A DNA stretch of 64,000 nt, taken from NCBI GenBank assembly GCA_900088475.1, contig FLMG01000350.1:62001-126000 (forward strand), written 5' to 3'. The notes under the pieces are model-generated. The model was not told the DNA's origin and searched no databases. It saw nothing but the letters and a program-made list of their open reading frames with translations. Below, in pieces: positions 50,546 through 57,013 of this stretch. A program made the translations under genes and the position numbers. The stretch is from Hyphochytrium catenoides (Eukaryota > Protista > Hyphochytriomycota). Position 1 is the stretch's first letter. The number at the start of each line of letters is the position of its first letter.

Positions 50546-53500
50546 ATGGAAGAAGGTCCCACTAAAGTGGACAGCCTGGTGCTCTACGGAGCGACGGCGC
50601 TCTCCTCCCTTCTCTCAACAGTGGGCTGCCTCTTCATCATCATCCGGTACATTTGGGCCCGCGGTCTTCCATCTGCGGATGTCAGCAAGGATCTTGTCTT
50701 TGTCTTGGCTATCTTCGTAAGCAGCCAAATTGCTGTTGTACTCGGTTTCTTTCGTCGTAAACTTACTCCTTTCTTTGTTGTTACAGGATCTCCTCGCTTC
50801 CCTCGCCTTCCTGTTAGGACAGCTGCCCACCGAGCACTTCTGGAATCAATTTTTTTCTGGTCCAAGTCCCGGTACCCTCTGCACTGTCCAAGGGATATTT
50901 ATTCAGTTTTTTGCATTGGCGAGCATCTTCTGGAATGCCCTCATGGCATACATGCTGTACCGCTTTGTCGTTAGGTGGGAGAAGCATGAAAACATCCGCT
51001 TGAAAGTGTTGTTGCTAGGAGTCGCTGTCATTTGTGTATGTGCTGTGTATACAGTCATCGCCGTCGAGCAGAGCCTTTTTGGCGATGCCACTCTCTGGTG
51101 CTGGATCTCTCAGGAACATAAGGAATGGCAATACATTCTCTTCTATGGCTGGGTCATTCTATGCTGGCTCTTCAGCTGTGCTGCGATCTATGTCGTACGG
51201 AGGAACATAAGGCGTAGGATCGGACGGCAACAGAATTTGGAAGCTTTAGACACAGCCCAAATGGTTGAGAGTAGGATAAGTCTTTATGTACTGACCTACA
51301 TTCTGCTCTGGTTCCCTGCGCTTGTCAACCGAACTACCCAGTATTTTTATGGCTATGTCTTCTGGACCATGCTCCTCCAGGCCATGACCGCGCCTCTTAA
51401 CGGATTCGTCGACGCGGTTATTTATAGTGGAGTCTGGGAGACGCCCATGAAGTTCTTTGCTAGGTTAAAGTCGACAGTGGTCTGCTGTGGGAGACCTGGA
51501 CAGCAAGGCCCATCCAACAGGAAAAGGACCATTCAGGGAGGCGGTGCAGCTTGTAACCCCTCACATCTTCTTCCTGCACACATTCTAGAAGAGCAACGAA
51601 CCGGTATAACGTGAGCTTTGACACTTGAACCATAAGCTTGTAACATTCTCTTGTTGACTATCTAGGCCAAGCGTCGATGCACCTAGTCACCTTTAATATG
51701 AACATGGGCCAGATTCCTCGTAATCTGCACTCCATGCTTCCTCTTGGCTACGATCTTTACGTTGTCGCAATCCAGCAGGCGACTCAGCCGCAGGAATTTG
51801 CCAAGCGCCTGCTGGTAGGACTCTCCCCGATAGCTTGACGGCCAGACGTTGACGCACTACTCTCTTTTCATGGTAATAGGATCACCTGAACCTGGGCTGT
51901 CAAACGGCTTCAGACTCGGCAAAAGGCCCTTACACAATAGTTTATCGAGAGGCCAGTAACTCGTTTGGTGGTAACTGCTTTACAGCACTGATGGTCTTTG
52001 CCTCGCAACAAGCGGTAAGAGGTGGATTTCGTCCCTCCCGCATCAAGTAGAACCTTCGCGGAATGTATTTCCCGAAGCTCAGGGTCAGCTTTTCATATCC
52101 ATAACTAATTTCATCTGTTCTCGATAGGCGGAGGCAGATGTCTTTTTCTGTCCTGGAGAACAGCATGCCTCACGTCTTGGCAGCCTTCTTTCCGGTGCTC
52201 CCCGGGCCTCAGTAGGCATCTGCTTCAGATACTTTGACGCTTGGTTTGCGGTCCTAACAACGTCATTAACTTGGGACTCAAGGTGATTTCCTAATAACGT
52301 CTCTGCCAAGGACCTGGGAGGCTCTCGATTAACTTTATATGGGGCGCTGTTAGCTCCACCTCTGTAGCACCTTTTTTTATCAAGCTTCTGCGGTTCTCTT
52401 TTCCCCGTCTGATCTGACGTTATTCTCACCGAACCGGTACCTGCTTATTAGGGACGGAACTTCTCGCAAGGAGCAGCGCATTCGGGATCTCCACAAGCTG
52501 ATTAAAGAAGCTCACATGACGCCAGAGGAAGTAGGCTTTGACTTCTCCCTGCTTTATCATCACACTATCATCCTGGGAGACCTCAACTTCATTCTCGAGC
52601 CCACCTATCACGACCCGGACATCTTGCAGACTCTACACGAAGCGGTGGTAGCCGAGCGTCAGTGGAGAGCACTGGAGCATTTGCTAAGCCGTGTAGCACA
52701 GCGAGGGGCTGCGATCAACCCTTCTGTCGTTTCGGAGACAAGAAACAGTATTATCAACGTTGATAACATTTCCACAGCCGCAAAGTTCGCTTTTGAGACT
52801 GTCCAGTCGCCGGACTTGGAGAAGGCAGACACGTCACTTAGAGATATTTATGACGAAGAGGACGATGCACCCTTAGGGCAAGAGGCTGCAGAATGGCAGA
52901 TCTGGACGCCACCTATAGGGGGATTTAGCTTCCCTCAGCTCTTAGAGGATTCTCTACGTGCGCTAACCGAGCGAGAAAATCTGTGGGACCGGCTTGTTGC
53001 CTGTGATCAACTGCAATACCTTAAGGGAAAGGGAGACGTTCTCTCAGGCTTCATGGAGGTATGATCTCACCTTGCTCGCTGGTATTGTGATGCTTCTTGG
53101 TCTAGCTAGATCTTGCCCTACGTAAGCTTCTAGTTTGCGCTTTTGCATGGCCTCTACTGGACGTCAAGTCTGCACTTCTTTTCGCGTGATGATGGTTTGT
53201 CGACTTTTGGAGTCCTCTATTCCTATAGCCTGTTGACGCACTGCATTACTAGATGCCCATCAGGTTTCCGCCAACCTATCGCTATCGCGTGGGACACCAT
53301 CGAAAGCTACTAGAGGCCAAAGCAAAGTTAGATATGCGTAAGACGTTAAACTGCAGAGTGGGTGCTATTCACCGGCCACCGTACTACGCGGACCGGATTC
53401 TATTCAAAAGCATGGCAGTGCGGAAGGAGGGCCTCAAGCTGAATAGCTACAGCTTGGTGGAGTCGGTCACAACATCGGACCATAAGCCCGTCGTTTGTTC

Positions 53501-54589
53501 CTTATCGTTTGAGGTGGATCGGCTCTACCGGCCATTGGAGCAAACGCGTGAGTTAAAGCGAATGGAAGACATGAAGAACGTCTATAAGTTCAAGGTCCAT
53601 TTGAAGGATGTGGCTTTGTTTTTGTTTAAGTCGACAAAGTAAGTACAACGCCGTCGCTGCTCTTCCTCTACCACGCGTCTTTTGATTCTGTCGCTTCCTC
53701 TGACTTTCCCTTTTTCTTTTCAAAGTGTCTGTTCTGTTGCCACCTCCCCCAAGTGCTCTTGTTTATATTGTCAACCCGTTACTGCTCTCTTTTCACCAGC
53801 TAGCTTTATTGCATCTTCCCAGGTCTAACGTCGTTTCAATATTCAGGAATATTTATGCTCTGCGGGGCCCAAACGCTTCTATGAAGCTTGATAGACGCCG
53901 ATCATCTCTAGGGTCCGACGTGGACTCTATTCTGGTCAGAGAGAATGAGAGTACTACGGTCTCGTCGGCAGTGGAGGGGTCGCTCCAAGCAGATTCTGAA
54001 CTGGGGCTATCAGACGAGGCGGTATGTCTAGTTTGCTGCTTCTCTCGCCCTAATCGATCCTCTTACGAGCTTGGGGGCCTCTTGTTACTATTAGGCGTAC
54101 CACACTGAGCAGCTGGCTTCCAACCTTATGTCCAGTGTCCGATCCTTTTTGATAAATGGAGCTGCTACTGGACCCTTCCCAGAGGGCTACAGCATAGACC
54201 GGGTCGTCGCCTTCTTCCCCATTCCTTGTGAGGACATCTTCGCAGTTCACCGCAAGCTCTACGAGGTAGTTGGGGTCTTGGACAGAGGATGGACTGGTGG
54301 GACAGGAACAAAGGAGGTGACAAAGAAGACCTTCCGCTGGGAAGAGGTCATGCGCTCGGGCATTCATTGTGAGGCGCATAATACCAGTCAGCAGAAGGGG
54401 ATGCATATGCTCTTGCGCTTTGAGGACAGCTCAGGAAACGACTTGGGGCAGTGCGTTTTTGCCGTAGTATCTCCCTATGGGAATGCTAAGCTCTTTGGCA
54501 CTGACCATAGTACGGTGAAGGCAGATGTTTCCCTCTGTGGGCAGACAATAGGGACCGCCAGTTTTGGGATTACGGTGGAATGCACTTAG
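50546..54589 (+). CDS. cAMP-receptor-like 7TM receptor fused to a degenerate inositol polyphosphate 5-phosphatase and a C2-like domain (GPCR-INPP)
   Basis: 7TM: LCTVQGIFIQFFALASIFWN, GDATLWCWI, LWFPALVNR, PLNGFVDAVIY. Phosphatase: VTFNM, YDLYVVAIQQ, ILGDLNF, DQL, FPPTYRY, PYYADRILF, SDHKPV. The parts join in frame through short introns (e.g. about 51604-51665). Confidence 0.85.
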
Positions 54590-55542: not shown

Positions 55543-57013
55543 ATGCCAAAGCTCAGCATTAAGGACGTTGATCTTAAGGACAAACGGGTCTTGATCCGTG
55601 TTGACTTCAATGTCCCCCAGGATGACGAGGGCAAGATCACCAACACTAAGCGCATTGATGCTGCTCTTCCGACAATTCAGTACGCTCTAGACCACGGTGC
55701 CAAGAGCGTCGTCCTTATGTCCCATCTTGGTCGTCCTGATGGACAGCGCATCGAGAAGTACTCCTTGAAGCCATGCGTCGCCGTGCTAAAGGAGAAGCTG
55801 CATCGCGATGTGCAGTTCCTTGATGATTGTGTTGGAGCTGAGGTAATCTGCACATGTCCACAAGGCATTTATCGCACTTACATGTGTCTGAAATGCTCCC
55901 ATTCCCTTCGACGACCTAGGTTGAGGCCGCCTGTGCCAACCCAGCTGCCGGATCAGTTATTCTTCTTGAAAATCTTCGCTTTCACGTTGAAGAGGAAGGT
56001 CAGTTGATGGATGTTGAGAGACTTGTTTCATATGGCCAAACCACGAGATCTTAGTGACTTGGTTCTTTATTATCACATACAGGCAAAGGTGTTGATGCGA
56101 ACGGGAACAAACTGAAAGCCGACAAAACTAAGGTGGAAGAGTTTAGGAAGTCTTTGTCTAAGGTGGGCATTGAGACATTATGGGGTAGTTCATGCAAAGA
56201 GCAAACCCACCTAACCACTTCACACAGCTTGGAGATGTCTTCATCAATGATGCCTTTGGCACCGCCCACAGAGCACATAGCTCTATGGCAGGAGTAAACC
56301 TACCCGTGAAAGCCGCAGGACTTTTGATGAACACGGAACTGAGCTACTTCGCCAAGGCATTGGAAAATCCTGAACGACCATTCTTGGCGATCCTTGGTGG
56401 TGCGAAAATCCAAGATAAGATCCCACTGATCCTCAACCTTTTAGACAAGGTGGACGAGCTGCTTGTCGGCGGCGGTATGACCTTCACATTCAAGAAAGTG
56501 CTAGACAACATGGAGATTGGCAATTCTCTTTTTGACACTGAGGGCTCCAAGATTGTGCATGAGATCATGAAGAAGGCTGATGAGAAAAACGTCAAAATCA
56601 TCCTGCCGGTTGACTTCGTCACTGCGGACGCCTTCAGCGCAGAGGCAAATGTAGGGCATGCCACTCAGGAGGATGGCATTCCTGCAGGATGGATGGGCTT
56701 GGATATTGGCCCAAAGTCCATTGAGCTCTTCAAAGAGTCAATTCTCAGATCCAAGACTATTCTTTGGAATGGGCCACCAGGGGTTTTTGAGTTTGATAAA
56801 TTTGCCAGCGGCTCTAAAGCCGTCTTGGATGCTGTTGCAGAGGCCACTGCAAATGGAGCCACAAGTATTGTGGGCGGAGGTGATACCGCTACGGTGTGCA
56901 AGAAGTTTAAGGCGGAGAAGAAGATCAGTCACGTGAGCACCGGTGGAGGAGCGAGCCTGGAGCTCCTTGAGGGCAAACAGCTACCTGGCGTGGTTTATCT
57001 ATCTGATGCTTGA
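55543..57013 (+). CDS. PGK: Phosphoglycerate kinase, cytosolic, 3 introns
   Basis: [11 protein letters not shown]; SHLGRP; [13 protein letters not shown]; [11 protein letters not shown]; LGGAK; WNGPPGVFE; GGGDT; [13 protein letters not shown]. Confidence 0.98.

Follow-up and report, generated by a model that had tools for sequence, protein, structure and literature searches.

Gene structure and domain order of the receptor-phosphatase fusion

The stretch of DNA analysed here, which we call the window, comprises 64,000 nucleotides of the Hyphochytrium catenoides genome (contig FLMG01000350.1, positions 62,001 to 126,000). Between 50546 and 54589 on its plus strand, the strand of all window coordinates below, lies a gene whose predicted product is a membrane protein of about 1037 amino acids. 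In this protein a cAR-like seven-transmembrane (7TM) receptor domain is followed by a cytosolic linker of about 55 amino acids and by a SHIP-like unit that consists of an inositol 5-phosphatase domain plus a C2-like module. Several catalytic residues of the phosphatase domain are replaced, and we read the product as a probable receptor-tethered pseudophosphatase.

We built the gene model by hand from open stretches that alternate between frames of the plus strand, reading the DNA at each change of frame, and then checked splice sites, phases and lengths with a script. The model has nine exons and eight introns; it starts with ATG at 50546, ends with TAG at 54587-54589 and contains 3114 coding nucleotides, that is, 1037 codons and the stop. 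All eight introns are GT-AG, with a GTA donor in seven and an acceptor reading TAG in six and CAG in two. Their lengths run from 62 to 194 nucleotides and are in no case a multiple of three; read through, six of the eight contain in-frame stops. The phases agree at every junction. The published H. catenoides assembly has 3.64 introns per gene (PMC5795050). Exon 1 (50546-50716) carries the start codon, a short extracellular N-terminus, the first transmembrane segment (TM1) and the first half of TM2, and exon 2 (50787-51603) runs from the second half of TM2 to TM7 and on through the cytosolic linker. The phosphatase-like domain of INPP5/SHIP type, at 51666..53579, is spread over exons 3 (51666-51814), 4 (51880-52014), 5 (52128-52282), 6 (52452-53058, with an insert of about 120 amino acids) and 7 (53253-53638). 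Beyond 53579, the rest of exon 7 opens the C2-like module (53580..54586), which continues through exon 8 (53823-54021), a region variable among relatives, into exon 9 (54095-54589) with the stop codon.

The link between receptor and phosphatase depends on intron 2 (51604-51665). It is 62 nucleotides long, reads GTATAA...TAG and joins phase 1 to phase 1, so that one base of exon 2 and two bases of exon 3 make up a Gly codon; if it were retained, translation would stop after three codons. The initial annotation of this DNA had given the same start, end and linking intron, and the script check of splice sites and phases found them exact. The family alignment runs on without a break across every exon junction of the model, and exon 1 aligns with the N-termini of the homologs P0016, P0069, P0134 and P0105.

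Searches and alignments were run exon by exon. Exon 2 scored above the Pfam gathering threshold for Dicty_CAR (PF05462; E 4.7e-9, 36.3 bits against a cut-off of 21, profile positions 73-254 of 305), and also above the cut-offs for 7tm_2 (E 6.3e-6, 26 bits against 20.6) and GPR_Gpa2_C (E 6e-5). Hydropathy peaks mark TM1 in exon 1 (residues 15-33) and TM3 to TM6 in exon 2; TM2 straddles the junction of the two exons, and TM7 stays under the peak threshold but lies inside the Dicty_CAR match. Exon 2 also holds the Cys at the start of TM3 (CTVQG, 50880-50894) and the loop motif LWCWIS (51093-51110). With an extracellular N-terminus, the last two thirds of the chain would lie in the cytosol.

For the phosphatase half, the INPP5-type model Exo_endo_phos2 matched exon 7 with E 1.2e-10 (41.9 bits, cut-off 27) and exon 6 with E 0.047. 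Exon 7 aligns to the catalytic domain of SHIP2 in the PDB through FPPTYRY, the DRIL motif and SDH. In the PDB sequence search exon 6 gave matches at chance level only and exon 5 gave none, both exons being short and divergent when taken alone. The C-terminal module aligns with the C-termini of the relatives, with which it has in common the motifs FPLP.EDIFA..RKLH, MH, LGQ and LT.GG..G; in the window gene, FPIPCEDIFA..RKL lies at 54212-54259 and the LGQ motif at 54443-54460. A profile made from this C-terminal alignment, with exon 9 included, matches the C2 region of the phosphatase-C2 crystal structures of SHIP2 (E 6.2e-5) and SHIP1 (E 2.5e-4), which points to a SHIP-like phosphatase-C2 unit as the cytosolic half of the protein. 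The Pfam model C2_SHIP1-2_2nd matches 3 of 11 family members weakly, and exon 9 alone has no Pfam match.

The same domain order recurs in other organisms. When exon 2 was searched against 1.84 billion representative proteins (E<=1e-3), it gave 1188 matches, the best of which is only 39% identical. Of the best 150, 36 proteins are similar to exons 6 and 7 too, arranged as in the window gene, and for many of them the similarity includes exons 3 and 9. Pfam recognised both a 7TM GPCR (G-protein-coupled receptor) family, Dicty_CAR or 7tm, and Exo_endo_phos2 in 14 of 16 scanned homologs. Oomycete members of the fusion come from Aphanomyces, Thraustotheca, Pythium, Globisporangium, Lagenidium, Plasmopara, Hyaloperonospora and Phytophthora. 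Outside the oomycetes, the fusion is present in transcript-derived complete open reading frames of Platysulcus tardus and Ancoracysta twista, in two transcriptome proteins of Mataza sp. and in a partial protein of Ectocarpus fasciculatus. The initial annotation had described a cAR-like 7TM domain joined in frame to an EEP-fold inositol 5-phosphatase and had proposed a Pfam scan as a check; with Dicty_CAR and Exo_endo_phos2 both over their cut-offs and a frame-consistent model, that description is borne out.

Catalytic residues kept and lost in the phosphatase domain

We read the catalytic positions from an alignment of the 36 relatives to which the exons were added as separate fragments. The consensus blocks of the family are TfNmGE, GvQEC, GyHG, NKGaVG, cHL.SD, RN, GDlNYR, DEL, FpPsyrR, R.PSyTDRiL and SDHrPV. 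Of the 36 relatives, 33 have the consensus at the core catalytic positions; five of those 33 vary at the Asn of RN, the Asp of HLxSD or the Arg of yrR. All sequence blocks of the 5-phosphatase fold could be aligned in the window gene, so the earlier statement that every landmark block is there holds for the blocks themselves, but several of the landmark catalytic residues inside them are replaced.

Block by block, TfNmGE reads TFNMNMGQ, in which the first Asn, a Mg ligand, is kept and the Glu is lost. GvQEC reads AIQQA, and here the Mg-binding Glu, present in 33 of 36 relatives, has become Gln (CAG, 51776..51778). GyHG is GGNC, with His changed to Asn. NKGaVG corresponds to APRASVG, where the family-invariant Asn-Lys-Gly is replaced by Pro-Arg-Ala (52200..52208), and cHL.SD corresponds to TSLTWD, where the His that contacts the 5-phosphate (His in 34 of 36 relatives) is Ser (52263..52265). 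In RN the Asn is Ile. Motif 1, GDlNYR, appears as LGDLNFIL (52573..52596); GDLN is kept at 52576-52587, while Tyr is Phe and Arg is Ile (52591-52593). FpPsyrR reads FPPTYRY, the last Arg being Tyr. The motif 2 region, HRPPYYADRILF (53370..53405), retains its Arg, its Pro and the Asp-Arg pair, and PSyTDRiL becomes PYYADRIL, so that Ser-Tyr-Thr is Tyr-Tyr-Ala. SDHrPV is nearly unchanged as SDHKPV (53475..53492), and the Asp-His pair of the EEP fold is in place (SDH, 53475-53483). At the changed positions the local alignments are unambiguous; one example is VGICFRYFDAWFAVLTTSLTWD of the window gene set against VGIAFRYFDSSFAFVTCHLSSD of relative P0019.

In 5-phosphatases, motif 1 is published as WXGDXN(Y/F)R (PMC7781601), and LGDLNFI departs from it with Ile in place of the Arg. 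Of motif 2, P(A/S)W(C/T)DR(I/V)L, the window gene keeps P, D, R, I and L; the whole GPCR-INPP5 family reads PSYTDRIL at this place, and the window gene has two changes beyond that. In the substrate-bound structure of synaptojanin-1 (Synj1), N543 and E591 hold the Mg ion, H689, N732, R734, Y784 and H859 surround the 5-phosphate, and D730 is the general base (PMC7781601); the position of H689 is that of the His in CHLTS of SHIP2. Measured against these roles, one of the Mg ligands is missing from the window gene, and so are two of the five groups that surround the scissile phosphate; the general base, the SDH pair and the Tyr and Arg for phosphate-4 are still there.

The domain as a whole is also altered. 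Among the 33 intact relatives, 54 alignment columns reach 90% identity or more; the window gene keeps the family residue at 31 of these, as compared with 49-54 in the intact relatives and 28-34 in three degenerate ones. The terminal branch leading to it has a length of 3.6 in the exon-7 region, where the median is 1.06, and of 1.16 in the 7TM region, where the median is 0.72; since the excess is larger on the exon-7 region, the extra change is concentrated in the enzyme half. The initial annotation had proposed a one-component signalling module leading from receptor to phosphoinositides. With the Mg-ligand Glu, the 5-phosphate His, NKG and the GDxNYR Arg all lost, a working enzyme of this kind is doubtful for this gene.

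Paralogs and degenerate relatives

The H. catenoides genome holds a second gene of this kind. It lies on the minus strand of contig C3003, from about 6149 to 1049, has many exons and encodes GPCR, INPP5 and C2 domains in the same order. This paralog keeps QEC, NKGAVG, AHLSSD, GDLNYR, PSYTDRIL and SDHRPV, that is, all the catalytic motifs, and is only 27-36% identical to the window gene. To judge by its sequence, it fits the idea of a receptor-to-phosphoinositide module better than the window gene does. The C3003 gene is broken by an assembly gap, a run of N, near 2020-2060. A search of the genome with exon 7 found only the window gene itself, and the paralogs were found by a Pfam profile search. 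Further INPP5-type loci lie at C2215:11734-12510, C1533:39979-41113 and C3687:84327-84611. We saw no cAR-like 7TM domain upstream of the INPP5-type loci on C2215, C1533, C3687 and the short contigs C4193 and C1143, with up to 10 kb examined per locus; all of them are probably ordinary, unfused 5-phosphatases.

Two observations concern other genes of the genome. There are three rhodopsin loci (C3799:6417-7183, C2531:7223-8107 and C2531:15707-16882), and the exon on C3799 is identical to HcCCR of H. catenoides (PDB 8gi9, 8ifu) at 98 of 99 aligned positions, a match that marks the genome as H. catenoides or as a strain very near to it. In the window, the first exon of a phosphoglycerate kinase gene (55543-56007, plus strand; Pfam PGK, E 5e-36) lies 954 nucleotides downstream of the stop codon of the receptor gene.

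The window gene is not alone in its degenerate state. Four further relatives are degenerate, namely P0016 (Hyaloperonospora brassicae CAI5742387), P0035, P0029 and P0001, the last being the best match of the window gene. Genes of the degenerate type are also listed as GPCR-INPP in Table S3 of the survey that defined this class, among them PITG_17353 of Phytophthora infestans and PAG1_G011722 of Pythium aphanidermatum, and the motif TFDMNW occurs in 11 entries of that table (PMC5784254). The text of PMC5784254 makes no mention of lost catalytic residues. The degenerate oomycete proteins have the same architecture as the window gene and, like it, lack the catalytic Glu, the GDxNYR Arg and NKG (of which P0035 has lost only the Asn), and most of them also lack the cHL His. 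They differ in that they have also lost the first Asn, the GDLN Asp and the SDH Asp, all three of which the window gene keeps.

Whether these losses happened once or twice was addressed with trees. In the 7TM tree, the window gene stands outside the clade (100/99) in which the four degenerate relatives group together. That clade is nested in one of 14 members (96/93), where the window gene is sister to the other 13 (97/91). The clade of 14 includes members from Aphanomyces, Thraustotheca, Pythium, Globisporangium, Lagenidium, Plasmopara and Hyaloperonospora; a phylogeny against oomycete GPCR-INPPs, which the initial annotation had put forward as a check, thus places the window gene in a well-supported clade with oomycete members. 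This 7TM topology suggests two separate losses of catalytic residues. The tree of the exon-7 region lacks resolution, has very long branches and fails to separate one origin of degeneracy from two. Approximately unbiased (AU) tests did not reject a grouping of the window gene with the four degenerate relatives, either on the 7TM region (p 0.47) or on the exon-7 region (p 0.48). Moreover, the window gene has three states in common with P0029: Glu changed to Gln, the Lys of NKG changed to Arg, and Thr changed to Ala before DR. The AU tests and these common states leave room for a single ancient pseudophosphatase branch. We therefore put forward, tentatively and as less likely than not, that the window gene and genes of the PITG_17353 type may come from one such branch, older than the split between hyphochytrids and oomycetes and kept since. 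If so, a receptor-tethered dead 5-phosphatase would have a conserved non-catalytic role, for example in lipid sensing or sequestration or in the regulation of an active paralog.

Possible function and place among known systems

How might such a protein work? The 7TM receptor would hold the SHIP-like phosphatase-C2 unit at the inner face of the membrane through the linker, which is about 55 residues long. The unit should still fold and sit at the inner leaflet, given its conserved fold blocks and C2-like domain, and with the phosphate-4 residues in place it may also recognise the head group of a phosphoinositide. It would hydrolyse the 5-phosphate poorly or not at all, and could instead bind and sequester an inositol lipid according to the state of the receptor. 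Alternatively, it could pair with a partner, such as the intact C3003 paralog, and regulate an active enzyme. Either way, receptor state would be coupled to lipid sequestration or to the regulation of an active enzyme. Inactive myotubularin-related proteins are known pseudophosphatases that partner with active paralogs. We give the whole reading, a receptor-tethered pseudophosphatase with a non-catalytic role, a probability of roughly 0.6. What is observed is how the gene is built, which domains it encodes, that relatives have the same architecture and which residues are lost; loss of activity, binding of lipid or partner and coupling to the receptor are what we infer from them.

Several points weigh against this reading. 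The general base Asp and its Asn in motif 1 and the C-terminal SDH pair are all present in the window gene. A metal can still be bound by the carbonyl oxygen of Gln, and some remaining or changed activity is thus conceivable. The single-gene fusion is a prediction from genomic sequence rather than from transcripts of this gene, and the boundaries of exon 8, which lack support from homologs, are the least certain part of the model. In the literature we searched, including PMC5784254 and PMC6033456, no functional test of any GPCR-INPP is reported.

The kept residues lead to a rival view in which the phosphatase is still active, perhaps slower or with a changed need for substrate or metal, and the protein is a one-component receptor lipid phosphatase. 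In its favour are the N-terminal metal-ligand Asn, the Asp and Asn of GDLN, the Tyr and Arg for phosphate-4, the DR of motif 2 and the SDH pair, together with a conserved C2-like domain; in SHIP2, the C2 domain boosts activity (PMC5550278). We nonetheless think this unlikely. At least 33 of 36 relatives, from several groups of eukaryotes, retain the Glu, His, Arg and NKG that are lost here, and 23 of the 54 near-invariant positions have changed. Mutants of the equivalent histidine are less active in other 5-phosphatases, and removal of Mg lowers kcat/KM about 10,000-fold, a cost of four orders of magnitude (PMC7781601). The same losses, and the very long branch of the phosphatase part, are also what one would expect if the gene were a decaying copy, a young GPCR-INPP pseudogene whose reading frame happens to be unbroken. 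This seems improbable to us, as its 1037 codons run without stop or frameshift and none of its 16 splice sites is damaged. Blocks of the fold core (FRYFD, HHTIILGDLN, FPPTYRY, DRILF and SDHKPV) are kept along with the C2 motifs, and the 7TM part is not unusually divergent. Nor does the gene look like a recent duplicate: the lineage is old, with at most 32% identity to any relative in the 7TM tree alignment (39% by phmmer) and 27-36% to the C3003 paralog, and degenerate relatives have been retained in many oomycetes.

Finally, the locus could be read as two neighbouring genes: one would encode only a 7TM receptor and stop at the TGA at 51612-51614, and the other would begin with the ATG at 51677 and encode the phosphatase-like protein. 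The stop does come three codons past the proposed donor of intron 2, and the ATG lies 11 nucleotides past the proposed acceptor, right where homology to phosphatases begins. Still, only about 62 nucleotides would separate the two genes, and this gap contains a GT...AG that resembles the other seven introns in kind and size, with fitting phases. Every long relative found through the 7TM exon has the phosphatase in the same chain, the transcript-derived reading frames included, the C3003 paralog of the same genome has the identical order, and the alignment of P0004 extends two residues upstream of the ATG at 51677. We consider two genes very improbable.

The architecture is known as GPCR-INPP, a 'GPCR-bigram', and was named by van den Hoogen et al. 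in 2018 (PMC5784254; also PMC6033456). With an N-terminal cAR-like 7TM domain and a C-terminal inositol polyphosphate phosphatase in one predicted chain (PMC5784254), the window gene belongs, by its sequence, to this published class, and the identity given to it by the initial annotation stands. That annotation had also supposed that the genome is not that of an oomycete and that the gene could extend the known range of the class. The host is indeed a hyphochytrid, of the sister lineage of the oomycetes. Hyphochytrium is absent from the text and tables of PMC5784254, and no paper in the literature we searched names both GPCR-bigrams and Hyphochytrium. The hyphochytrid host is therefore new for the class, but the extension is a minor one, since the same fusion is present in Platysulcus, Ectocarpus, Mataza and Ancoracysta. 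In the 2018 survey, GPCR-INPPs were found in oomycetes (one to nine copies) and Nannochloropsis gaditana (seven) and nowhere else (PMC5784254). Among our relatives, P0002, P0043, P0044, P0075 and P0115 have a cAR-like 7TM domain plus INPP5 with intact catalytic residues and come from sets labelled Platysulcus tardus, Ectocarpus fasciculatus, Ancoracysta twista and Mataza sp.; the labels of transcriptome-derived members are those of the deposits, unscreened for contamination. The 5-phosphatase-type fusion thus appears to occur also in sets labelled Rhizaria, Provora, brown algae and Platysulcus, which would revise the 2018 limit to oomycetes and Nannochloropsis. We considered whether the window gene might be the first GPCR-INPP outside oomycetes and rejected this, given Nannochloropsis in the literature and the Platysulcus, Ectocarpus, Ancoracysta and Mataza members. 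One member stands apart: in P0115 (Mataza), a pair of EF-hands at residues 384-445 separates the receptor from the bulk of the phosphatase domain, which suggests a calcium-regulated variant of the fusion.

The GPCR-INPP class thus extends to the sister lineage of the oomycetes, and in some of its members the enzyme half is degenerate although the frame is open and fold blocks and C2-like domain persist. Within one genome, the window gene with its degenerate phosphatase and the C3003 gene with an intact one make up a natural matched pair, with which catalysis and binding could be told apart. H. catenoides is a harmless saprotroph and already a source of optogenetic channels, and the pair would be easy to clone and assay.

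Compared with known systems, the window gene is closest in architecture to the published GPCR-INPPs, with which it has the order of cAR-like 7TM domain and phosphatase in common, and from which it differs by its hyphochytrid host and its degenerate active site; that class includes INPP4-type members, whereas the window gene is of the SHIP-like 5-phosphatase type. Its 7TM domain is of the Dicty_CAR type also found in the cAR/CRL receptors of Dictyostelium. The inactive myotubularin-related proteins resemble it in having a lipid-phosphatase fold without the catalytic residues and an intact paralog in the same genome, but theirs is a protein tyrosine phosphatase (PTP) fold and not the EEP fold, and a partnership with the paralog is hypothetical here. 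Among solved structures, the closest relatives are the phosphatase-C2 units of SHIP1 and SHIP2 (PDB 3nr8, 5okm, 5rw2, 6dlg; PMC5550278), with E 1.5e-22 for the catalytic domain of P0004 and 6e-5 for C2. SHIPs are soluble, are recruited through SH2 and have intact active sites, whereas the unit of the window gene is joined to a 7TM receptor and is degenerate. As in GPCR-PIPK (RpkA type), a GPCR is joined to a phosphoinositide enzyme (PMC5784254), but the effector is phosphatase-like in the window gene and a kinase in GPCR-PIPK, and for both of them coupling to G proteins is hypothetical.

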